A stretch of DNA of 64,000 nt from NCBI GenBank assembly GCA_002104945.1, contig MCFH01000017.1, forward strand, positions 310,001 to 374,000, written 5' to 3'. Shown in pieces: positions 1,136-46,399 of the stretch. The notes beneath the pieces are model-generated. The model was not told the DNA's origin and ran no database searches. It saw only the letters and a program-made list of their open reading frames with translations. Every line of letters begins with the position of its first letter. The stretch's first letter is position 1. This DNA comes from Piromyces finnis finn. Taxonomy: Eukaryota; Fungi; Neocallimastigomycota. The position numbers and the translations under genes were made by a program.

Positions 1136-1679
1136 ATTTTATTATAATATGATTAGTTGTAAAGAATTTTATAATTTTAAAAGAAAATGATTTTTAAAAG
1201 TTAATTTCTTTTTTAATATAATTTATTTAAGAATATAAAATATTTATTATATAATAAATAGAATATTCTATAAATTGAAATCTAAATAATTCATTAATTA
1301 TTTTAATTATTTTAAAATTAATAATATTATTCTCCAATATAATAATATAACATATACTTTTCTTTATAACTTATAATAAATAACTAAAATAAAATATTTA
1401 AAATGATATTTTAATATTTTTATATTTTTATAAATAATTATTATATAATATCTAAATAATAATTATTCTATTTTTATTAATGCATTAGTCATTTATATAT
1501 TTATATATTAAAATATTAATATCATATTTATTTTAATATTATATTTTTTATAGAATTAAATATTATTATAACAAATATTTCATTAGAAATAATACATACA
1601 TCATACAAAATAAAATAAAATATTAAATATAAACTACAATATATTTAATTAATTAAGCTAAACTTTTTTATTATTTTAA

Positions 1680-1736
1680 TAATTTTAATTAAAATAATAA
1701 TAAAGTTTAAAAATATTTGATGCCGTTAAAAAAAAA
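1680..1736 (+). mobile_element. Severely 5'-truncated copy of the LINE 3' terminus with short poly(A)
   Basis: taattttaattaaaataataataaagtttaaaaatatttgatgccgtt followed by A9 matches the LINE's last ~47 nt before its poly(A) (11375-11421) almost exactly. No clear TSD found. Confidence 0.7.
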
Positions 1737-1740
1737 CTAG

Positions 1741-1890
1741 AATTTATACTGTATCTTACATTTTTTGCCAGAAATTTCTGCTTGCTTTAATTTTTGTCTG
1801 GCTGAAATTTTACCAGAGGTCAAATTTCCTCTGGCTAGAAATTCTGGCTAAATCCTTCCAAAATCTAAGATAAAGTAGTATACAAAATTT
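1741..1890. repeat. Small imperfect palindromic (MITE-like) element
   Basis: Outer imperfect inverted repeats: tatactgtatcttacatttt vs aaaatctaagataaagtagtata, and gccagaaattt vs aaattctggc. Inner hairpin ccagagg-N8-cctctgg at 1813-1834. More GC-rich than its flanks. Confidence 0.4.
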
Positions 1891-2000
1891 AAATATAATT
1901 TGAAAATTATACATTACATTTTCTAATAAAGAAGATAATTACATGTAAGGAGGGAGAAATAAAAAAAGAGAGATATTCTTTTGCTCCGTTTTGCTTTGCA

Positions 2001-2035
<35 letters not shown>

Positions 2036-3492
2036 GGTATAAAAGAGTAAATACATTAGTGTGTATAAAGGAAAAAATTCGCATATCCTCTTCTTTATAA
2101 TTCTAATATTATTTTATCTTTACAAACTATAGAAAATAAGGGCAAAAAAGATTATAAAAAATTAAACAAATTAACACAAAAGTTTGAAAAAAAAAAGTTT
2201 TTTTTTGATCCTTTTACCTAGTACTAATAAAAAAAGATTAAAGTAAAAGGAAATGATTGTCTTCAATCCTCATCTTTTCATTATTTTCCCTTTTCCATTT
2301 TCCATTTTCCTTTTTTTTTTAATATTAAAATATTTGTTTCAGTTATTTCCATTTCCATTTTTTAATTTATTTTCTTTTTGACGTTTCAAAAATTTTTATT
2401 TTAAATTCAGAAAATAAATTAAATTAATTTAAAAATTGAGAAAAACTTAAACTTTAATTATATTTAAATTAATTAATTTATAAAGTAACATTGTTATTTT
2501 TAATAAATAAAGTTATAATACAATATATTAGAAAAATATAATATATACATATTAGAGTATGTTGCATCAATTATTTTAAACTTTATTTGTTTCATTTTGA
2601 AAAAATGTTACAATAAAAATGTTACAAAATTACTAAAAGATTGGCAATGATAAAAGAATAATAAAAGAATAAAAGAATAATAAAATCAATAATAATAGTA
2701 ATAATTGACAATAATAATACTATTTCCATTAATAATGCTTTATTTAATAATTTAAAAGAATGTTTAAAATAATATATTTTTTCTTTTAAAACTATCTATT
2801 ACAAACTTTAAAAAAAATTGTTTGAGATTTTTTATTAAATTGTACACAAATATATTTAATAAATTTTTTTAGTTTTTTATTCGTTAATTCTATTTATAAA
2901 ATAAATTATAAATTATAAATTATAGATATTATCATTATCATTTTCTGCTTTTTTTTATTTTTTTTTTTTACAAATATTCCAATATTCTCTAAGTAAATGG
3001 ACTTTTAAAATATTCTTTTTTTTAAAAATCTTCTTTTCATACAAGAGTTAACATTTTTTTCTTTAATAAAAAGTTTTAATATTTTTTTTGTTAAGTAAAT
3101 TTTTTATAAATTAAAATTTGTATTTATGTATTAATGGACAATTAAGTCGTGTAACATTAATTTAAAATTAATATTTAATTTTTTTATGTTTCAGTTTTAA
3201 TAAAGAATAATATTTAATAGAGTTACACAATAAAAATTAATAAAAGAATTATATATAAAAAGAAAAAAGGTATTTCTTTTTTTTTTTCAATCAATAAAAA
3301 ATAATAAAAAAAAAAAGGTTTTTTTATTAAAATAATTTAATAAAAAACAGTAATAATAATAATAAAAAATAATCAGTAATTATTGAATAAGGTATAATCA
3401 ATTATTATTTGATTATATTATATAAAAATTAGATATTTAATAATAATTTAAGAATTTAGAATCAAAGTAAAAATAAAAAAAAGAAAATAAAA

Positions 3493-6641: not shown

Positions 6642-9600
6642 ATGTCAGTCCTTTATATTAAAGATAAGAATTATATCAGACGTGGTACCCGGTCTTATGG
6701 TATCCCCTTAGATGATATTCGCTCCTTCTTTATCCGTGGTATTCGATCATGGTCAGTAAATATGCTATGGGAAAAACTCGAGGTTATTCTAGAAGATAAA
6801 TTTAATTCAGTTATTAGTGTTAAATATTTTCAGACTTTCAATGATCACTTTTTCTTAGTCAAGGTTCATGGTTCATCAAAAGATTGTATTAAAATCTTAC
6901 ACATGTTAAAGAAGAAACTTTCAGTTACCTCAATTTCCTTTTCAGCTCGTAGTAGAAGGAATCACAAATACACTTTTTCCACTCTCAAACGTAAAATTTT
7001 AGTTTCTAATAAACATCAACATTCTATTCAACAATCATTTCAACAATCAGTTCAACAATCAGTTCAACAATCTCATCAACAATCCGATCTTCAACAAGAT
7101 CTTCAACAGGATCTTCAACAAGTTTCCCATCATGAAAATATTCCAGATCTACAGCAAACACAATTTCAATCTCAACATTCAACAATTAATTCTAATAGTT
7201 CTATCAACTCTGATAACAGTTCAATAGTTGATAGTTCTTCAGTTTCACAGCCATCTAGTAATAGTTCTACTTATTCCTCTGATGCATCATCCATTAATAA
7301 CGATGACTTTAATAATAATAATAATAGCAACGATTCTTCCTCATCCAACAAGCCTGATAACTTTTCTTTTTGTCTTAGTTGGAACACCAATGGGTGGAAT
7401 CATGAAAAGAGAGATAGTATTAGCTATTTCACAGCTATTTTCAAACCATTATTCTTATGTTTCCAAGAAACTGGTAATGGTTCTGGATCGAATACAGATT
7501 ATCCTTGTCGTGTTACTTTGCGAAACTATAGACACTTTTTCAAGAAAGCTGACGAATCAGTTCCGGGAATGAGAGGTTTATATTTAGGTTTTCACAATTC
7601 GTGTCAAGCCTCACTTGAAAACTTCTCTGGAAAGTATATTATTTCTATTTATACTTTTAGTCTCTGGAATAGATTCAAATGCTCGATTGGAAATGTTTAT
7701 ATGCCTCATAGTCATCACAACATCTATGTTGATCATGCAAAGTTAGAAGTTCGCTTGTGGTTACAAACTCATTCATCCCATCCATCGATTCTTGTTGGTG
7801 ATTTTAATATGTCTAAAGTAAAATTATCCAACTGGTTATCAACTAATGGATTAGGAGATTGGGAAATTCTTCCGCTTAGAGGGTCTACTATCTCTTGGAC
7901 TCGAGGTGATCAATCTTCCGACATTGACCATGCTCTTATCAATTCGAAGATGAAAGATCTTATTCACTCAGGATCATTTATAAATAATTTTTATCCTGTA
8001 TCAGACCATAAGCCACTTCTTATTAATGGTAAAATTATTCCTATGGAAGATTTTTCTAATGACTTTAATGTTCCTAAGAAAATTCTGAAATGGAATAGAT
8101 TAAAATGTATTGAGGAAAAGGAATCTATTCTCAGTCATAATAAATTCCAAATACTTTCAGCAAAATTCAACGATCCTAATGTTTCTACAGATGAACTTTC
8201 CAAAGAGTTTACTTCAACTGCTTTTTCAATTGCAGACGAGCTCAGTATTACCTCAGCAAATAATGTTATAAAGTCTTCATTTCATATTTCACAACAAATT
8301 TTTAATCTTCAAAAAATCAAAATGAAGTTGTATAAGAGATTTAAAAAAGAAAGAATTTATGATATAGATGAATTTATTAAAAGAATTAAAATCTACCGTA
8401 AACTCATTGATTACATCCACAAAAGATGTAATGAATTTAGGAAGCAAGAATATCTTCATTGGATTAAAACAGGATGTGAGTATATGAAGAGTCATAATCC
8501 TAAGAAGGCCTGGAAATGGATCAAGAAAACTGCAAAAATTGGAAAAGATTCTTTCTTTATTGCTCAACCAATTAAAAACAAAAATGGAGAATTAGTTGTT
8601 GCTACGGAAGAACAACTAGATGTGTGGCATGATCATTTCGAAAAGCTTGCATCAGATCCAAGTGGTGTAAGTCTTGATTTGGAGCATTGGTATGAAGAAC
8701 CAACGAATAAACGTTTTTCACTCCCTATGCTTGATGAATGGGATATCAACCAAGATATTAGTATTGATGAAGTCAAGTCAGCTATCCTCTCTACTCCGAA
8801 TTATAAAGCATCAGGTCCGGATGGTATTCCAATTGAATTTTACAAAGCATTAATTCCATCAAGTAATGATTCTAATAATGCTACAGATAATAATTCTTCC
8901 GGTAATACCACTTCAGATAATGATGCTTATGGTTTAAATTTTATTCTTAAATTATTCAACCGTATTTGGGATGGAGACTTCCCCAACTCATGGAATGAAT
9001 CCAGTATTGTTTCTATTCCTAAGAAGGGAGATTTGACAGATTGTGATAACTATCGAGGTATATCACTTATCAATAATGGTATTAAGTTGATTTCCAAAAT
9101 TGTCACCACTAGAATCTCAGAATATGGTTTAAAGAATAATTTCATTAGACCTGAACAATTTGGTTTTCGAAAAAAGGAAGAAAGTATTAGTCTTTTCATT
9201 TCAATCCAAGAAATATGCCGTAGACGTCAATTAGATAATAAAGAGACATATTTGGCCTTTTTAGATCTCAGGAAAGCATACGATTCAGTCCCAATCGGTA
9301 ATATTCTCCATAAATTAGATTGTTTAGGAATCCGAGGTAAGAGTTTACAATTTATCAAAAATTTATATTTAACATCTAAGGCTAATGTCAAATTAGATGG
9401 ACAATTCTCGAAATCTTTTGATGTGAAGAAAGGAGTCCGTCAAGGATGCCCTCTTTCTCCTATTCTCTTTAATCTCTTTATTAATGATATATTTAAAGAG
9501 TGTGAAGATCTCGGAGTCAGTTTAGGTGACACTCGATGCTGTGGTGGACTTTTTGCAGATGATATAGTTATTTGTGCTCCAACAAGAGGATGCTTAAAAA

Positions 9601-11183
9601 AGATGCTTAGAAGAGTTAATGAATGGGCCTTGTATAATGAAATGGAATTTGGTATCCAGAAGTGTTCAACGATGGTGATTCGTCCTGAATCAATAGAAAA
9701 TCAGAACAAGAGAGATCCAACATTTTACTTAGCAGGACAACCCATTCCAACTACTGATTGTTATACTTATCTTGGTGTTCCATTTGATAAGAATCTGTCC
9801 CTTAAACCAGTTATTAAAGCTCTTAATAACAAGGTTTTGAAAGGGCTTTTTTCAGTCAGTAAATTCTTAAGAAATCCTAATATTCCTATTCCCTTCAAAA
9901 AGCTAGTACTTAACTCACAAGTGATTAGCAGAGTTTCATACTTTGCACCATTACTTGGATCCAACAAAGCCAGGTCTAGTATTGCACAGAAGCATGTTAA
10001 CAAAGGAATACGATGGGTTGCCGGAGTTCATAAAGCTGTATCGTTTATATCTTTATACTCTATTTCAAAAGATTTGAATATTCCTCCATTGTCAGCCAAA
10101 TGTGCATTAGCTCAGGTTAGATGTTTTAACAAATGGAAAAACTCAAATTGTATTATCTCATACCTTGTCAATTACATTCCTAAATTTAGAAAATACACGT
10201 GGTGCAAATCAAGTAGGACACTTGATAAAAAACTAAAGAAACATGGAGATGTTAAAGCAGTTAAAAACTTTTATTGGAAAGATCTCAAAGGGAATTCAAT
10301 CAAAGCGCAATATTATGATGATAATAAGTTTATTGAAACTAAAGATTTTATTAAATTATGTTATGAGTACCCAGAGTTTGCCTATGGCTTCTACTGGCTA
10401 TTGAAAGCAAGAAGCGGATACAAGTTGGATGCTAGAGTTGCCAAAGCTGCCAAATTTGTTGATCCAGTTTGTCCTAACTACTGTCCATGTTGCAAGTGTG
10501 GAGATCAAAGTATTAAACATTGGTTATTAGATTGTCCAACATTTAGAGATATCCGTATTAAACATTATGATTCCATAGTCCAGCTATTAAATTTTTTCAG
10601 TCAACGTAATTCCAATAGTCCTATCAATAATAATGAAATTGATAATATCAGTAGAGATAGTAATAACATTAATAGTAATAGTAACAATAGTAGTAATAGC
10701 AATAGTAATAATAACAATAGTAATAGTAACAATAGTAATAATAACAATAGTAGTAATAGAAATAATAATATTAGTAATGATAGCAATAGTGAAGATAATA
10801 ATTCTAATTTAGATAGTAATTTAGTTAATGATAGTAATAGTTCTAATAATCCGGTGAATATTAATGTGTATGATTATTCTAGTGTGTGCAGTAAAATATT
10901 TAAATTCCTTCTTGGGGGAAGAAGTTTTAACAATATCAATTACAATTCAAGGGAATGGAAAGAACTTTGTAAGCGTCAGATTCAATCTGGTACTAATGAA
11001 GGAACACCATTCTTGACGGTAACCGCGGAACTTCTAACCAAAATCATGCCTTTTGCTATTGGCCAGCAATGGTCAATGTTCAAAAGGTTTGAAGCAACAT
11101 CCAAGAGCGTCAATGCTGAAGAAACAGTAAGACAGGCCAGGAGGGCCAGCGCAACCAATGGAGATCATAATTTTGTCCCATGA
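6642..11183 (+). CDS. LINE polyprotein: N-terminal RRM-like region, apurinic endonuclease, reverse transcriptase, CCHC zinc knuckle
   Basis: APE motifs SWNTNG, CFQET, GNVYMP, VGDFN, SDIDH, SDHKPL. RT motifs KASGPDGI, KKGD..DCDNYRGISL, QFGFR, FLDLRKAYDSV, GVRQGCPLSPILFNLFI, LFADD, YTYLG. C-terminal CPCCKCGDQSIKHWLLDC. Confidence 0.95.
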   Translation: MSVLYIKDKNYIRRGTRSYGIPLDDIRSFFIRGIRSWSVNMLWEKLEVILEDKFNSVISVKYFQTFNDHFFLVKVHGSSKDCIKILHMLKKKLSVTSISFSARSRRNHKYTFSTLKRKILVSNKHQHSIQQSFQQSVQQSVQQSHQQSDLQQDLQQDLQQVSHHENIPDLQQTQFQSQHSTINSNSSINSDNSSIVDSSSVSQPSSNSSTYSSDASSINNDDFNNNNNSNDSSSSNKPDNFSFCLSWNTNGWNHEKRDSISYFTAIFKPLFLCFQETGNGSGSNTDYPCRVTLRNYRHFFKKADESVPGMRGLYLGFHNSCQASLENFSGKYIISIYTFSLWNRFKCSIGNVYMPHSHHNIYVDHAKLEVRLWLQTHSSHPSILVGDFNMSKVKLSNWLSTNGLGDWEILPLRGSTISWTRGDQSSDIDHALINSKMKDLIHSGSFINNFYPVSDHKPLLINGKIIPMEDFSNDFNVPKKILKWNRLKCIEEKESILSHNKFQILSAKFNDPNVSTDELSKEFTSTAFSIADELSITSANNVIKSSFHISQQIFNLQKIKMKLYKRFKKERIYDIDEFIKRIKIYRKLIDYIHKRCNEFRKQEYLHWIKTGCEYMKSHNPKKAWKWIKKTAKIGKDSFFIAQPIKNKNGELVVATEEQLDVWHDHFEKLASDPSGVSLDLEHWYEEPTNKRFSLPMLDEWDINQDISIDEVKSAILSTPNYKASGPDGIPIEFYKALIPSSNDSNNATDNNSSGNTTSDNDAYGLNFILKLFNRIWDGDFPNSWNESSIVSIPKKGDLTDCDNYRGISLINNGIKLISKIVTTRISEYGLKNNFIRPEQFGFRKKEESISLFISIQEICRRRQLDNKETYLAFLDLRKAYDSVPIGNILHKLDCLGIRGKSLQFIKNLYLTSKANVKLDGQFSKSFDVKKGVRQGCPLSPILFNLFINDIFKECEDLGVSLGDTRCCGGLFADDIVICAPTRGCLKKMLRRVNEWALYNEMEFGIQKCSTMVIRPESIENQNKRDPTFYLAGQPIPTTDCYTYLGVPFDKNLSLKPVIKALNNKVLKGLFSVSKFLRNPNIPIPFKKLVLNSQVISRVSYFAPLLGSNKARSSIAQKHVNKGIRWVAGVHKAVSFISLYSISKDLNIPPLSAKCALAQVRCFNKWKNSNCIISYLVNYIPKFRKYTWCKSSRTLDKKLKKHGDVKAVKNFYWKDLKGNSIKAQYYDDNKFIETKDFIKLCYEYPEFAYGFYWLLKARSGYKLDARVAKAAKFVDPVCPNYCPCCKCGDQSIKHWLLDCPTFRDIRIKHYDSIVQLLNFFSQRNSNSPINNNEIDNISRDSNNINSNSNNSSNSNSNNNNSNSNNSNNNNSSNRNNNISNDSNSEDNNSNLDSNLVNDSNSSNNPVNINVYDYSSVCSKIFKFLLGGRSFNNINYNSREWKELCKRQIQSGTNEGTPFLTVTAELLTKIMPFAIGQQWSMFKRFEATSKSVNAEETVRQARRASATNGDHNFVP

Positions 11184-16876: not shown

Positions 16877-17602
16877 ATGATGAAAGTTAAACAAAATAGT
16901 CAAGATATACAAGAAGTATTAAAGTCAAAATTCGATCATACTAATTGTTATGATGATGATATTTGTTCAGAAGATATAAGTAAAGTTAAACTGGAACCAT
17001 ATACTTTTACATGGTGTCCAGAAAATTGGGGATTTGTTTATAATGTATATGTTACAGGAACATTTAATGATTGGAAATTAAAGGATAAAATGACATATAA
17101 CTATGAAACTAAATGTTTTGAATGTACTGTAATGATTAATCCAAGAGTTATCACAAAATTTAAATATGTTGTTGATGGTCGTTGGATTACCGATTCATGC
17201 TATCCAGTCATTGATGATGGTTCAAATAATTGTAATAATGTTCTTTACGCTCAACTTTTCCCAAGTACTCATGCAAATCCTACTGTAATTATGGTTGATG
17301 TTCTTCAACAATTTGGATTAGATGATATTGTTCAAATTGGCTATGGTAGACCACATACTTGGTCATTATTAAATAAAGCAGAAGCTATTTATAAAGGCCG
17401 TTGGCCATGTCTTTTTATTATTATTAAAGAATCTGGTACAATTTTACCTGAATGTATTGAAAATTTCATTCTTTCTCGTTCCAGCTATCCAAAAGAAAAT
17501 TTATTAATTATGAAAACAGATGAATATCCACCATTAATAAATTCAAAAGGTTTCCTTGCTGATTTATTTGAAGAATATTGTTTACCACATGATAAAAATT
17601 AA
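16877..17602 (+). CDS. Protein with CBM48/AMPK-beta-type glycogen-binding domain and unassigned C-terminal domain
   Basis: 241-aa intronless ORF. YTFTW...VYVTGTFNDWK...M...F.CTV.I......FKYVVDGRW is the AMPK1_CBM/CBM48 pattern. The C-terminal half lacks the AMPK-beta ASC motif. Confidence 0.75.
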   Translation: MMKVKQNSQDIQEVLKSKFDHTNCYDDDICSEDISKVKLEPYTFTWCPENWGFVYNVYVTGTFNDWKLKDKMTYNYETKCFECTVMINPRVITKFKYVVDGRWITDSCYPVIDDGSNNCNNVLYAQLFPSTHANPTVIMVDVLQQFGLDDIVQIGYGRPHTWSLLNKAEAIYKGRWPCLFIIIKESGTILPECIENFILSRSSYPKENLLIMKTDEYPPLINSKGFLADLFEEYCLPHDKN

Positions 17603-31380: not shown

Positions 31381-34300
31381 ATGTCAGTAAAACGAAATAA
31401 CAGTGAATTAAATGACGATACTATACATAGTATGGCAAAGTTAAAAAGTGAAACTGAAGAGCAATGTAAGGAAAAACATTATGAATTCGATCAGATATTA
31501 CAACTACAAAATAAACAATTATTGGAATTGGAACTGGAACAGAAAAAACAACAGGAAAAACTAAAAATAAAACAACAACAACAAACAAACAACTTAAAAA
31601 AAGTGCTCAATTTAAATATACCATTCAAGGAAAAGCAACGAATCCTCAATGAACAAAAAAATAATCTTTTAAAAAGAGCTAAATATCGTCAAGAAATTCT
31701 TGACCATCAACCACCCGTTGAAATGGCTTTAAAAATGGTATTATATTTTCAACATCAACATCACCAAGATACCTATAATCTTCTTCTCTATCAACATAAT
31801 CAACTTCAACATGCAAAAAGTAGAAAAGAACAGGCTCATTTATTCCTGGAACATCAACAAATGTTTTTAAAATTAATTGATATTCAACAAAAAGTATTAC
31901 TACAAACGTTAGTGGAACAACAAGAAAAAGCGGAATACGAAATAAGTGCAATACGTCATCTTTCCTTAAACGATAAGGATGATGACGATAATGAGCATAC
32001 AGATGTTGATGATAAAAGATCAGATGATGCAAAAAATCAAACATCTTTTGAAACTTTGGAAGAAAGAAAAAAAGACAGTACTATATTTGAACTACCTCAA
32101 GATAAAGATTTTGAATCACTAAAACAGCCAATTCCATCAACTCCTAATCAGATTCTAGCACCTTACTTTTTACGTAGTCATAATAAAAATAAAAGTGACA
32201 GTCAAAGACTTAGTCGTGATAAGGATCAAAGTGACACTCAAAGGCTTAGCCGTAATAAAGATCAAAGTGACACTCAAAGGCATAGTCGAAGTATTAGTCA
32301 AAGTTCGAGTGATTCCTCCTCTTCTACAACCTCTTTAATAATGTCTTCACCTCTTTTTTCATTCACCGAACCTAAAAGTACAGAGGCATTAAACGAAGAA
32401 ATAAAAGATTCTTATTTACTGAAAGATGTTGTACAAAAACATAATATGAATAATTTTGATGATCATAAACGTAAAGAAAAGGAATTTATGGAACGTTCTT
32501 CTGCTTATTTAGAGTGTAAAAATATTAAAGATATAAAAATTGACGTTCCAATTCATCCATCTTATCACAAAAAAATGAATGGAGATACCAAAAAAAATAT
32601 TGATGACTTTTTCTACAAAGCCTATCAAAAATATACAAAAACAAAATTTATTAAAACTCTTCGTGATGATATGATCAAGAATGGCTTTAATAAAAATGTC
32701 TTTAAAAGTATTTTTGATGAAGAGAATAATGAAAATAGCTATGATGATGATGATGGTAGTAATGAAAGAATTATTACTAAGAATTCACATACCATTTCTT
32801 CTGATTCCCTTCCACCATCATTAGAAGGAACATCTACAGGTACGAATATATCCCATAAAAAAAACTTACTAGCAACAACAACCAACATCACCACAACAAT
32901 TTCATTGTCATCAATAGATAATTCAAATGATATTCTGCCAAGCACAACTGATAAAAGTAACTATGATACAAAAGAAATTAAAAAAGAAAAAGAGAAAAAA
33001 GAAAGAGAAGAAGATGACAAAGAAAAAGATAATGAAAAAAATGATGATGAAAAAGAACAATTTATTATCTCTAGAGGAAGACCAAAAAATTCCACTAAAA
33101 ACAAAATGGAAGTATATAAATCAAAAATGAAAAAAGGATCCAAAGATAATATGGAAGGAACTGTTATTGTTGATGGAGAAGTTATTAAATATAAAGAATA
33201 TATTGTTGAAAATAAAGATCAAAGTGGGAATAAATCAGGTATTAAATATAAGCATAAACGGATTATTCGTCGTTACTTTTGTTCTAAAGAAGGATGTCGT
33301 AAATCATTTACAACAAGGTAAAGGGATGATGAAATAAAAAATATTACAATTTATATAAAAATCAATATTTATAAAAGATACAAGAGGAGAACTACAATTT
33401 ACCTCTTTAATTATAAAAAAAAAATTTTTTTTAACCTTTATCCAATAGTTTTTCATAGATAAAATATAGATTTATTTAATATTATATATTATTATATAAT
33501 ATATTTTTTAACCTTTTTTTTTTTTTTTTTTTGATTTTCAATCTATACAGTGGACATGTCATAAGACATATTCATTCATGTCATTTAGCTCTAAGACCTT
33601 TCATCTGTAAATATCCTGGATGTAGATCTAGATTTGGACGTCAAGATAATCTTCGTCAACACTATAAAGTACATTTTCGTAAATATCCTAAAATTAAGTT
33701 TAATTATCGGGAGGTTCTCACTCAAAAACAAATTAGAGAATTAAATATTAGTCCTGAAATTATGAATGTTAATAATGATGAGCTTTACCAATACAGAAAA
33801 AGTAATAAAGAAAAAAGTGATGATAATATGGATGATAATGAAAAGCATAATATGGTTTACCAAAAAATGGATCATAATCAAGAAACATGTGTATTAGATC
33901 AACCTATTCCCTCAAGTTTCCAAAATACTAAATCAGAAATAGTTGCTGATGATTACAGAACAGATTATTCCAACACTCTTTATGATGATCAAACATCTTA
34001 CGAAACACCTTTTTCCAGTACTATTTATGACGACCAAGCATCTTATTCCAGTACAACATACGATGACCAAATATCCTCTTCATTCGTAATTGAAGACGAA
34101 TATAAAAATTTAACGAGTGATCTTGTAGTCCTACCAGGAACTGAATTAGTTCCAACAGCAAATGAAAGTGATATTATTGATTTAGAACAAAAAACGTTAT
34201 CTAAAGAAAAACATTTTTCTTTACCTGAAGAATCATCAAAAAGGAAAGAGAAAACCAAAACATCAACAGAAGATCATCCTGAGAATGACCAAGAAGAGGG

Positions 34301-35627
34301 TGATACGAGTTCAAATCCATCAAATTCAGTAAAAATGAAAATTAAAATGAAGAATAAAATGAATAAAGCACCAACCTTTAAGAATAAACAAAACCATAAT
34401 ACGGAAATCGAAATGAATTGGAAATTAAAGAACCCTATGGTAGATACAAATCTAAACCTAACCACTGAAAATAACACCAAGGATTCTCAAATGGATAAGG
34501 ATACCTCTTTTCCTACTTCATATGCCTCAGAATATGATGTTCAATACACTCTAGAATTAGACCGATCACATCCTTCAATGAACAATATTCCATCCACTTC
34601 CCAACTCACTTCACTTCCAATAAAGATGGATAATCCAAAGGTTGGAACTCTAGATCCTAATAATAGTAATGTTTTAAATATATCCAATGTTCCTGCAATC
34701 ATGCCTTCACCATTCTTAAAAAAAGTTGAACCAACATCAGTTATTTCGCAACAATTATTTACTAGTCCAAGTTTGAACGCTTTAAATTCTCTCTCCTTAT
34801 CCAATATTACTAACCCAAATGAACATGGTACAAAAGCATCAACACTAAATAAATCAGATGATGAGAGTATTACAATTCCAGGCAAGATCACTACATTAAC
34901 ACCATTATCCACTACAGCTAATACAATGATATCCAACAATCCTTCGAATCGCCTAATGTCATCTAATAATAGTTTTTCTATCTCTAGTTTAGATAGTCAT
35001 TCCATGGTAAGACCAACCCCAACCGTCAATCGTTCCAATTCATTACCAAATCCGCAGCATACCCCAATTGTTGCACTGTCTTCTACATCCTCTAACACCA
35101 CCTCATCCGATTATTTAGACATTATTCAATTACCACCTCCTATGTTATCCCAAGATCCAGACCAAAGAGTCAACCCCTCTTTACCTCCACCTATATCCAT
35201 TTCAAAAAACTACTTTATAACCCATCCAAGTCAAGCCAGTTCTCCAACCACAACACTCTATGGTCAAAATGTTTTATACCAAACGATACCAACACCTCTA
35301 TCTTCAAATCCTCAACAAAATGTTCAAGTTCCATTCCCATCATTGGATTATTCTTCATCCTATGATAATACATCTTCCACCTCCACCACTCCTTCTTCTT
35401 CAAAGGTTTACCTTTCCAATACTTCGTATCATTCCGTTAATCCAGAAAATACCTTCCAAAATACCAATCCATGGCTTTTAGAATTCCAACCCATTACCAC
35501 CCCTGCCTATCAAAATTATCCAAATTATCATTTAAATTCCATTGAAAATTCCGATATGGAAATTATGAAAAAGCGATTACATACCACTACCGCCACACAA
35601 AACATTGATTCTTTTTACTATATTTAA
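31381..35627 (+). CDS. C2H2 zinc-finger transcription factor, Nrg1-like finger pair; 2 exons (~1337 aa)
   Basis: Exons 31381-33317 and 33551-35627 (ag|GT...AG|t). The spliced fingers YFCSKEGCRKSFTTSGHVIRHIHSCH and FICKYPGCRSRFGRQDNLRQHYKVH resemble Nrg1 (FTTSGHLARH; CxxxGCxxRFSRHDNCLQHYRTH). Gln-rich N-terminus, Ser/Pro/Thr-rich C-terminus. Confidence 0.85.
32185..32290 (+). repeat. Three 36-bp coding repeats (xSDx/TQRLSRxKDQ)
   Basis: NKSDSQRLSRDK / DQSDTQRLSRNK / DQSDTQRHSRSI in the translation. Confidence 0.8.
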
Positions 35628-36559: not shown

Positions 36560-39152
36560 ATGGCATTACTTTTTCAATCCATTCCAAATGCTACATTTGG
36601 ATTAAAAAATCAATTATTAGTGTCGTCACTTTCAACTAAAAACCCATTAAATAATATTTTATGTAACAAATTAAATTCAAATAATGCTTTACACTTTGGT
36701 ATGTATTTTGTATTTATTTATTATTTTTTTTTTGGTAAATTGTTATTTACAATAGTTGTTGTTGTTGTTATTGGTTATCCTTTCATTGATATAACCTATT
36801 ATAGTGTCTTTTTCAAGAAAAAAAAAAAAAAAAAAAAGAAACGTTAAAAATATAAAGAAAATAAAATAAAATTGAAAGTTTTTTTTTTAATTTATTCATT
36901 TGTTAAAAAGAAACCATTGAAAATGAAAATGAAAATGAAAAAAAAAAAAGTAGAAAAGAAATTGCTATTTATCAGAATAAAGTGTGGTGAATGTGGTGGT
37001 GAATGTGGTAAAAGTTTTTGGTTTACTTTTTAGTAATAAAAAATGTGTTATTAATGTATACATTTGCATTGATTAATGTATACATTTAATAAATTTATGT
37101 ATGATCCATAAAATGATCATATGTTTAATTAAAAAAAATTAATTAAATAGAAATGGAAAGGAAAAAAAAAAAAAAAAAGAAATTTAAAAGAAAGAAAAAA
37201 AAAAAAAAAAGAAGATAAAAAGACGATTTTTATTTTTAACAAAAAAAAAAGAAGAATGAATAAGAAATAAATAAAAAAAAAGGAATTAAAAAAAAAAATA
37301 TTTAAATAATAAAAAAAAAAAAAAGAAAAACATTCTTCATCAACACACCAAAAAAATTTTTTTTTTCGCTTCCTTAAATTAAAGTTTAATGTCTTTTTTT
37401 TTAATAAACTTTTTATTAATAAAAAAAAAAAAAAAACTATAAATAAAAAGAAAAAAAAAAATTTTTTTAAGAAAAAATAAACCAATTTTTTTTTATAATT
37501 TTTATGATATTTTTATTTTTTTTAAGAAAATCATTTTAATTTTTTTAAAAAAAAAAACTAATTATAATATTGTTATAATATTATATATTTGTTATATTAT
37601 ATATATATCCATATAAATATCATAATCAACTTTTAAAAAAAAAAACAATACATTAATAGCTAGTAAAGCTTCATTAAATCTTTTAAATAAAAATCATACT
37701 TTTACAAATTTAACTTCTCAACGTTTTTTGACAACAACAATGGCTGATTCAAAAAAATCTGCTGCTAAACAACTTCAAGAAAAGTTATTCTACAAAAGAA
37801 AGAATGCTGGTTTAACTATGTCTGAAGAAAGTATCAAAAAATCTGATGCTTATAATGAAGACTATAAACAATTCTTGGGTGAATCTAAGATTGAAAGAGA
37901 ATTTGCTTATAATGCAATTGAAAAAGCCAAGGCTAATGGATTCAAAGAATACACTCCAGGTATGGGATTAAAATCTGGTGATAAGATTTTTGTTAATAAC
38001 CGTGGTAAGGCTGTTATTTTAGCTATCATTGGTGAAGAACCAGTTAAGGAAGGTGTTCATATTTGTGCTGCTCACATTGATTCCCCACGTCTTGATCTCA
38101 AACAAGTTCCACTTTATGAAGATACTGAAATTGCTCTTTTCAAAACTCACTACTACGGTGGTATTAGAAAGTATCAATGGGCTGTTATTCCACTTGCCCT
38201 TCATGGTGTCATCTACAAGAAGGATGGTTCTGTTGTTCAAGTCAAGGTTGGTGAAGATGAAAATGATCCAGTTTTCTGTATCACTGATTTATTACCACAT
38301 CTTTCTCAAGAACAAAACAAACGTTCTTTACCAGATGGTATTAGAGGTGAAGAATTAAACGTTGTCATTGGTTCCTTACCATTCCGTGATGATGAAGCTA
38401 GTGAAAGAGTCAAGACTAACATTATCAAGACCCTTAACGAAAAGTACGGTATTATTGAAGAAGATTTCCTTTCTGCTGAATTAGAAGTAGTTCCAGCTTT
38501 CAAGCCAAAGGATGTTGGTTTTGATCGTAGTATCGTTGGTGGTTATGGTCAAGATGATAAGGTTTGTAGTTATGCTTGTCTCAGAGCTATTCTTGATATC
38601 AAAGATACTCCAAAGAAGACTGCCGTTGTTTGCTTAGCTGATAAGGAAGAAATTGGTAGTGAAGGTAACACTGGTTTAAGATCTTCCTTCCTTAAATACT
38701 TTGTCTATGATATTGCTGAAGAATTCGGCTGCAAGGGAAGACATGTTCTTTCCAAGTCTGAATGTTTATCTGCTGATGTTACTGTTGCCGTTGATCCAAC
38801 CTTCTCTGATGTCACTGAAAAGCGTAACGCTTGTTACCTTAACTGTGGTGTTGGTATCTGTAAATTCACTGGTGCTAGAGGTAAATCTGGTTCCAATGAT
38901 GCTCATGCTGAATTCGTTGGTAGAATTCGTACTTTAATGGATAAGAATGAAGTTGTCTGGCAAACTGGTGAACTCGGTAGAATTGATTTAGGTGGTGGTG
39001 GTACCGTTGCTGCCTATGTTGCTGAACTTGATGTTGACACTATTGATGTCGGTGTTCCAGTTCTTTGTATGCATGCTCCATTCGAACTTACTTCTAAGCT
39101 CGATAACTACAATGCCTACAGATGTTACAACGTTTTCATGGCTGAAAAGTAA
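36560..39152 (+). CDS. M18-family (aspartyl) aminopeptidase, bacterial type, with spliced N-terminal organellar presequence-like extension (~543 aa)
   Basis: M18 motifs AHIDSPRL, KTHYYGGIRKYQW, YGQDD, DKEEIGS, LSADV, HAPFE. Exon 1 36560-36698 (donor GTATGT at 36699) joins exon 2 37660-39152 (after cattaatAG) in frame. An internal ATG at 37740 begins the bacterial-like portion. Confidence 0.88.

Positions 39153-42510: not shown

Positions 42511-46399
<3,889 letters not shown>

Follow-up and report, generated by a model that had tools for sequence, protein, structure and literature searches.

What happens to a bacterial gene once it has settled in the nucleus of a gut fungus, and can it acquire the means to send its product into an organelle? 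This question is raised by a locus of Piromyces finnis lying in a 64,000-nucleotide stretch of GenBank assembly GCA_002104945.1 (contig MCFH01000017.1, positions 310,001 to 374,000 of the forward strand), which was analyzed as a whole and is referred to here as the window. The locus encodes an M18 aminopeptidase of bacterial type, the catalytic part of which is preceded by an extra N-terminal leader that begins on a separate 5′ exon (Table 1). As set out below, the gene structure and the bacterial origin of the catalytic part are well supported, and the leader is probably a mitochondrial-type matrix-targeting presequence through which the protein would be imported into the hydrogenosome.

The list of open reading frames (ORFs) in the window contains a 95-codon, ATG-initiated ORF from 36560 and an uninterrupted ORF at 37728-39152. 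In a first-pass annotation, the former had been taken as exon 1 of a gene spliced in frame from 36698 to 37660. This proposal holds, as the joining of these two positions yields a single open frame of 1632 nucleotides (nt) encoding 543 amino acids, with canonical sites at both ends of the intron (donor ...CACTTTG/GTATGT at 36698/36699, acceptor ...TTAATAG/CTAGT at 37659/37660) and an exon 2 that spans 37660-39152 overall. The leader had been estimated at about 72 residues; the in-frame extension is confirmed, but its length is 73 residues, followed by 470 residues of catalytic part. The latter was also correctly described as free of introns from its own ATG, since its ORF is uninterrupted and the Met encoded at 37740 (Met74 of the spliced product) aligns with the start Met of bacterial homologs, leaving the 73 upstream residues entirely extra. 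The frame is preceded by a stop 16 codons before the first ATG, with no other ATG intervening, and the context of this first ATG includes A at -3 and G at +4. GC content in the window is 10-20% outside genes and 35-40% in coding parts.

Evidence for the junction comes from other gut fungi. A protein search recovered seven fungal relatives with 85-92% identity in the catalytic part, three of which (539-544 amino acids) carry a homologous leader. In Neocallimastix californiae, the RNA-derived contigs L006 and L007 contain an uninterrupted 539-amino-acid frame that is divided into two blocks in the genome (L005, and L004 in a second assembly). Exon 1 of this gene is 139 nt long and ends with ...TTTAG/GTAAG, exon 2 begins after ...ATATAG/CTACT, and the cDNA reads straight across. 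The length of exon 1 and the phase of the junction (phase 1) equal those of the window, and the cDNA-proven intron of about 1.49 kb occupies a position identical to that of the window intron. Uninterrupted spliced RNA contigs also exist in three lineages, represented by P0003 (three contigs, L001-L003), P0006 (L011), and P0122 (L016). In Piromyces sp. E2, the closest sampled relative for this gene, exon 1 occupies L008:3321-3459 (KZ151131.1), some 1.5 kb upstream, and is followed by a GTATGT donor and an inferred intron of about 1.46 kb in the position matching that of the window; the 26 leader codons of exon 2 are intact and in frame before the annotated ATG. With strong comparative evidence for a phase-1 junction after an exon 1 of 136-139 nt, the presence in the window of a two-exon gene with an in-frame leader is solid.

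Two gene models in these relatives are affected by the same structure. The GenBank model PIROE2DRAFT_21276 of Piromyces sp. E2 comprises only 470 amino acids, exon 1 having been missed. A second leader-bearing Neocallimastix paralog is found at L018:4501-8559 (GCA_050613775.1, contig JBODTK010000001.1), in the same genome as L004. Its inferred intron, of about 2.4 kb, sits at the matching position, and the two exons were called as separate ORFs of 81 and 469 amino acids.

The peptide encoded by exon 1 is 62-76% identical to its counterparts in Piromyces sp. E2, N. californiae, P0003, and P0006. For exon 1, the ratio of non-synonymous to synonymous substitution rates (dN/dS) ranges over 0.15-0.33 in eight of 10 pairs and reaches 0.61-0.67 in the two pairs of closest relatives; when the mature parts of the window and Piromyces sp. 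E2 are compared, it is 0.10. These ratios indicate that exon 1 evolves under purifying selection. They also bear on the idea that exon 1 goes unused in P. finnis and that the product is the 470-residue protein starting at 37740, as in the Piromyces sp. E2 and Anaeromyces robustus models. The shares of sampled words found in the RNA runs X2-X4 (0.56-0.59) are equally compatible with use of both exons and with use of exon 2 alone, and were not taken as evidence. Such disuse is highly improbable in view of the intact frame, the canonical splice sites, and the purifying selection on exon 1 relative to four lineages. The 26 leader codons of exon 2 are moreover intact in the window but decayed and interrupted by stops in copies that have lost exon 1, and the Piromyces sp. 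E2 model merely missed its exon 1. A search for the exact 26-nt exon-exon junction gave no matches in the metagenome and metatranscriptome contigs of the Joint Genome Institute (JGI), a result that is uninformative because P. finnis seems to be absent from that collection.

The enzyme downstream of the leader belongs to a bacterial branch of its family. The catalytic part matches the Pfam model Peptidase_M18 (PF02127) with 267 bits against a cut-off of 24, covering profile positions 1-431 of 432, and the NCBIfam equivalog NF002600/PRK02256 for a bacterial aminopeptidase with 651.9 bits against a cut-off of 529, covering positions 2-462 of 463. Another M18 model, NF002759, scores 184 bits, under its cut-off of 356. 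Among 31 aligned sequences, the invariant columns include the His of HxDSP, the DD pair, the EE pair, the Asp of VDPTF, and the His of MHAP, and the same His/Asp/Glu motifs occur in the window translation; these invariant residues are presumably the metal ligands and catalytic residues of the protein. Among proteins of solved structure, M18-family aminopeptidases 1 from Clostridium acetobutylicum (2GLJ, 490 bits), Borrelia (1Y7E), and Thermotoga (2GLF) score 419-490 bits, in contrast to yeast Ape1 (50 bits) and human DNPEP (35 bits). By these matches, the catalytic part belongs fully to the ApeA-type subfamily of bacterial M18 enzymes and lies outside the eukaryotic DNPEP/Ape1 lineage. The eukaryotic enzymes DNPEP, Ape1 (Lap4), and Ape4 share with it the Pfam family and the metal-site residues, but the scores of Ape1 and DNPEP are only 35-50 bits compared with 490 for the clostridial enzyme. 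The likeness to bacterial ApeA extends to length, start Met, and the invariant His/Asp/Glu residues, whereas the P. finnis gene is nuclear, is interrupted by a spliceosomal intron, shows the base composition of fungal DNA, and encodes a eukaryote-added leader of 73 residues.

The best non-fungal matches are hundreds of proteins of 465-472 amino acids with 64-67% identity, and those with names come from Oscillospiraceae, Ruminococcus, Porcipelethomonas, Huintestinicola, and Clostridiales. The Oscillospiraceae and Ruminococcus enzymes are 65-67% identical to the catalytic part, which, together with the NF002600 match above its cut-off, bears out the Clostridia-like origin proposed in the first-pass annotation. 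A maximum-likelihood tree built from eight fungal and 57 bacterial sequences unites all fungal copies on a long branch with a Shimodaira-Hasegawa-like approximate likelihood ratio test (SH-aLRT) value of 100; as the tree has no distant outgroup, it does not place them within any named family of bacteria. A grouping with DNPEP, which would have spoken for a native eukaryotic enzyme, is contradicted by the bit scores given above. The gene next to the aminopeptidase has an ortholog in the same place and orientation in Piromyces sp. E2 (58% identity over 845 residues) and A. robustus (41% over 722 residues), and N. californiae has a similar-sized gene at the same neighboring position. A single ancient transfer followed by vertical descent is thus indicated, with contamination excluded by the fungal intron, the fungal composition, and the conserved neighbor. 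Taken together, these comparisons make horizontal gene transfer (HGT) of the catalytic part from bacteria into gut fungi well supported.

An aminopeptidase of MEROPS family M18 from Firmicutes has been listed among 35 HGT events in tortoise gut fungi (Pratt et al., 2024; PMC10978972). Table 1 of that study marks the M18 transfer as not occurring in mammalian gut fungi, which is corrected by the present results, as the M18 gene does occur in N. californiae, Piromyces sp. E2, A. robustus, and the P. finnis window. Accession-type terms for the M18 family were not found in the supplements of that study (Pratt et al., 2024).

The leader has the composition that had been ascribed to it, being devoid of Asp and Glu and rich in Ser, Thr, Leu, Lys, and Asn. 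It contains no acidic residue, six Lys and Arg, 15 Ser and Thr, 13 Asn, and 15 Leu. At the 15% acidic content of the mature part, the chance of finding no acidic residue is about 6e-6. The leaders of four orthologs have zero to two acidic and seven to nine basic residues in about 73. The part of the leader encoded by exon 2 is homologous to that of the orthologs and lies upstream of all sequence that aligns with bacteria. It ends with the QRF-L motif also noted in the first-pass annotation: QRF, followed by L, M, F, or I and then by TT, is present in all seven leader-bearing sequences, and in the window it stands five residues ahead of the Met that corresponds to the start of the bacterial proteins. 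In position and form, this motif would fit an R-2/R-3 processing site, and cleavage near it is predicted on this ground. An R-10 motif (MIP/Oct1) was also considered as a conserved feature and rejected, since P0003, Piromyces sp. E2, and N. californiae do not conform to it, unlike the window and P0006.

On the strength of its composition and the QRF motif, the leader is probably a matrix-targeting presequence that takes the protein into the hydrogenosome. Several observations weigh against this interpretation. The maximal hydrophobic moment of the leader, calculated over an 18-residue window, is 0.32-0.34 and falls under the shuffled mean of 0.38-0.41; the earlier proposal of a presequence is made plausible by composition and motif and gains no support from amphipathicity. 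The leader has only one or two Arg residues. The first 31 leader residues are conserved beyond what is usual for presequences, which hints at a more specific interaction. AlphaFold assigns residues 1-80 a predicted local distance difference test (pLDDT) score of 23-37, with one short low-confidence helix at residues 29-39, in line with an unstructured leader, but this low confidence says little because the whole model is poor, with a mean pLDDT of 56. In P. finnis, furthermore, the splice is deduced from the orthologs. Finally, the peptides predicted by DeepLoc to be hydrogenosomal in gut fungi include an 'Aspartyl aminopeptidase' that is not attributable to this gene rather than to native DNPEP (Pratt et al., 2024; PMC10978972, Dataset S3).

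The strong conservation could also be explained if the leader were translated but did not address the enzyme to the organelle, and worked instead as a propeptide or as a tail for interactions on a cytosolic protein, be it in M18 oligomer assembly or in delivery elsewhere. The propeptide of yeast vacuolar aminopeptidase I, which is unrelated to the leader, acts in the cytoplasm-to-vacuole targeting (Cvt) pathway and is acidic. M18 enzymes with N-terminal propeptides do exist, as the precursor-length Ape1 chains in PDB entries 5jh9 and 5jm9 illustrate. Conservation of the peptide encoded by exon 1 is unusually high: across five lineages, 23 of its 46 positions are invariant, among them an SSLST-x-NPLN stretch. 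The amphipathicity of the leader is not above chance. However, the leader differs diametrically from the acidic Ape1 propeptide in its near-zero acidic content and net positive charge, which are typical of matrix presequences. In addition, an invariant Arg-Phe motif lies exactly at the border with the bacterial-type N-terminus, and no fold is predicted for the leader, all of which make a non-targeting role unlikely. Direction of the enzyme to another destination, such as the secretory pathway or a membrane, has nothing to recommend it beyond the presence of an N-terminal extension, and it is very improbable given that the leader contains no hydrophobic core of signal-peptide length, its longest apolar run being about four residues.

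If the leader is indeed a matrix-targeting presequence, it would direct the precursor into the hydrogenosome through the translocases of the outer and inner membranes (TOM/TIM) retained by gut fungi, and a processing peptidase would remove it near QRF. The matrix M18 enzyme could then trim peptides arising from presequence removal and protein turnover. In favor of such a role, the predicted hydrogenosomal set contains, besides the 'Aspartyl aminopeptidase', the alpha and beta subunits of the mitochondrial processing peptidase (MPP), the mitochondrial intermediate peptidase (MIP), PreP, Xaa-Pro aminopeptidase, thimet oligopeptidase, and LAP3 (Pratt et al., 2024; PMC10978972, Dataset S3).

Not all copies of the gene retain the leader. 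In A. robustus (L009, MCFG01000496.1), a tandem M18 pair occupies L009:12-269 and 1606-3018; the annotated 470-residue gene is the downstream copy, and the upstream copy, which is cut by the contig end and visible only in its last 85 codons, has 90% DNA identity to the downstream copy. No exon 1 was found in the 1.3 kb between the two copies, and the DNA before the ATG of the downstream copy aligns with the exon-2 part of the leader but is no longer coding. In the P0007 lineage (JGI contigs L012-L015), the real product likewise has 470 residues, and the leader remnant before its ATG is broken by stops. P0007 itself was called as a 645-residue protein by reading a TGA as a sense codon. These leaderless copies look like secondary losses that would yield a cytosolic enzyme, with the qualifications that an alignment of AT-rich leader remnants is weak evidence and that the order of the leaderless copies is not resolved by the tree.

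A cytosolic form might also be produced from the leader-bearing gene itself. The first-pass annotation had suggested dual localization through the retained internal ATG. In such a scheme, a long spliced mRNA would give the organellar protein, and a transcript starting within the intron, or initiation at Met74, would give the cytosolic one. The Met aligned with the bacterial start is indeed kept in the window and in most orthologs, and the leaderless copies of other lineages show that an enzyme lacking the leader is viable. The only hint of a short transcript is RNA contig L010 from an Anaeromyces-like lineage, which begins within the intron, about 150 nt from its start, and continues past the acceptor; the spliced form, L016, comes from a strain 96.5% identical to it. 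L010 may have been transcribed from an internal start or may be plain pre-mRNA that still holds its intron. Leaky scanning is unlikely because the context of the first ATG is strong, and in N. californiae a five-residue deletion removes the counterpart of this internal Met. Use of one gene for two compartments is therefore doubtful, and of the earlier suggestion only the retention of the Met in the window is borne out.

The origin of the leader was traced by several searches. A leader profile compared with 1.84 billion representative proteins retrieved only three short ORFs, all of which are exon-1 calls of the same gene, and a word search with residues 1-76 found only two full-length orthologs. 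In the JGI metagenome and metatranscriptome contigs, the profile matched only the N. californiae cDNA contig. Exon shuffling from a recognizable gene is thus rejected at the level of detectable similarity, since neither the profile nor the word searches revealed a donor. With no donor detectable, the exon arose from non-coding DNA or has diverged past recognition. In plants, nuclear genes of mitochondrial origin have gained presequences by exon acquisition through exon shuffling. These cases resemble the present one in that the targeting peptide resides on a separate 5′ exon joined to the transferred coding region, but the plant exon was often copied from the gene of another organellar protein, whereas the P. 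finnis leader has no detectable donor. A scan of eleven other long ORFs of the window found no evident gene for a known hydrogenosomal protein, the presequence of which could have been compared with the leader.

The most likely history of the gene can be assembled from these observations. A bacterial ApeA-type M18 gene would have been acquired once from gut Clostridia of an Oscillospiraceae-like kind, in an ancestor shared by all sampled fungal genera. Its frame would subsequently have been extended upstream of the retained bacterial start by the 26 codons now in exon 2 and by a new exon of 46 codons, separated by a long phase-1 intron. In some lineages, duplicates would then have lost exon 1, their leader decayed, and these copies probably supply a cytosolic form. 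That a de novo leader exon recruited the bacterial aminopeptidase to the hydrogenosome for the last step of presequence and peptide breakdown, and that partial duplications losing this exon re-created cytosolic copies, is put forward tentatively.

Table 1. Coordinates of the M18 aminopeptidase gene and its conserved neighbor in the window.
Feature	Position	Strand	Basis
Exon 1, coding part: 46 codons and first base of codon 47; N-terminal leader half	36560..36698	+	ORF, GTATGT donor
Intron, 961 nt, GT..AG, phase 1, very AT-rich	36699..37659	+	Boundaries by reading sequence
Start of exon 2: last two bases of codon 47 and 26 codons; C-terminal leader part	37660..37739	+	In frame with exon 1
Codons Q67-R68-F69-L70, candidate R-2/R-3 processing site	37719..37730	+	QRF invariant in 7/7 leader-bearing sequences; predicted cleavage
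Catalytic part, 470 codons and stop; M18 aminopeptidase of ApeA/PRK02256 type	37740..39152	+	Profile matches, alignment
Downstream neighbor gene, 1234-amino-acid ORF; synteny marker outside the unit	42511..46215	-	Orthologs beside M18 gene

Several other ORFs of the window, all on the forward strand, have recognizable features. The ORF at 6642-11183 (1513 amino acids) contains a reverse-transcriptase domain (RVT_1) and belongs to a long interspersed nuclear element (LINE)-type element, and that at 16877-17602 (241 amino acids) carries an AMPK1_CBM domain, which is the glycogen-binding module found in the AMPK beta subunit. No Pfam match was obtained for two long ORFs that precede the M18 gene, at 31381-33321 and 33531-35627, although the translation of the latter opens with C2H2 zinc-finger-like motifs.

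Parts of this picture have precedents. The N. californiae protein annotated as an aminopeptidase I zinc metalloprotease (P0004, 539 amino acids, GenBank/JGI) is an ortholog or close paralog with 88% identity, the same two exons, and the leader; this automatically annotated model differs from the window protein in the five-residue deletion that takes out the bacterial-start Met. The gain of a targeting sequence after lateral transfer is an established principle, as exemplified by RquA of anaerobic eukaryotes, which acquired a mitochondrial targeting sequence after its transfer (Stairs et al., 2018; PMC5953543). Both cases involve a bacterial enzyme that moved to a eukaryote and had an N-terminal targeting sequence added afterwards. 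Unlike RquA, the present case concerns a peptidase in a hydrogenosome-bearing fungus, with a discrete new exon and recruited upstream sequence, and with targeting that is predicted only. Post-transfer fusions and intron gains in early-diverging fungi have been described in general terms (PMC11291939). The first-pass annotation knew of no description of such a gene. This has to be narrowed, as the N. californiae model already included the leader and the M18 transfer had been listed (PMC10978972), but the gain of the exon is apparently undescribed. The link between HGT, the leader exon, and the conserved processing motif likewise appears to be unpublished, and no publication seems to discuss the N. 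californiae leader. New here are this explicit link, the lack of a leader donor, the leaderless derivatives, and the corrections to annotation, which concern the Piromyces sp. E2 model without exon 1 and the Neocallimastix paralog whose exons were called as separate ORFs.

The locus offers a clean and datable example of a bacterial gene that was fitted with a eukaryotic intron, a new 5′ exon, and a leader, and it may show how a transferred gene is drawn into a reduced mitochondrion. If the predicted targeting is true, a terminal aminopeptidase would join the predicted peptide-degrading set of the fungal hydrogenosome, and the gain and loss of organelle targeting on a single HGT gene would form a traceable natural series.

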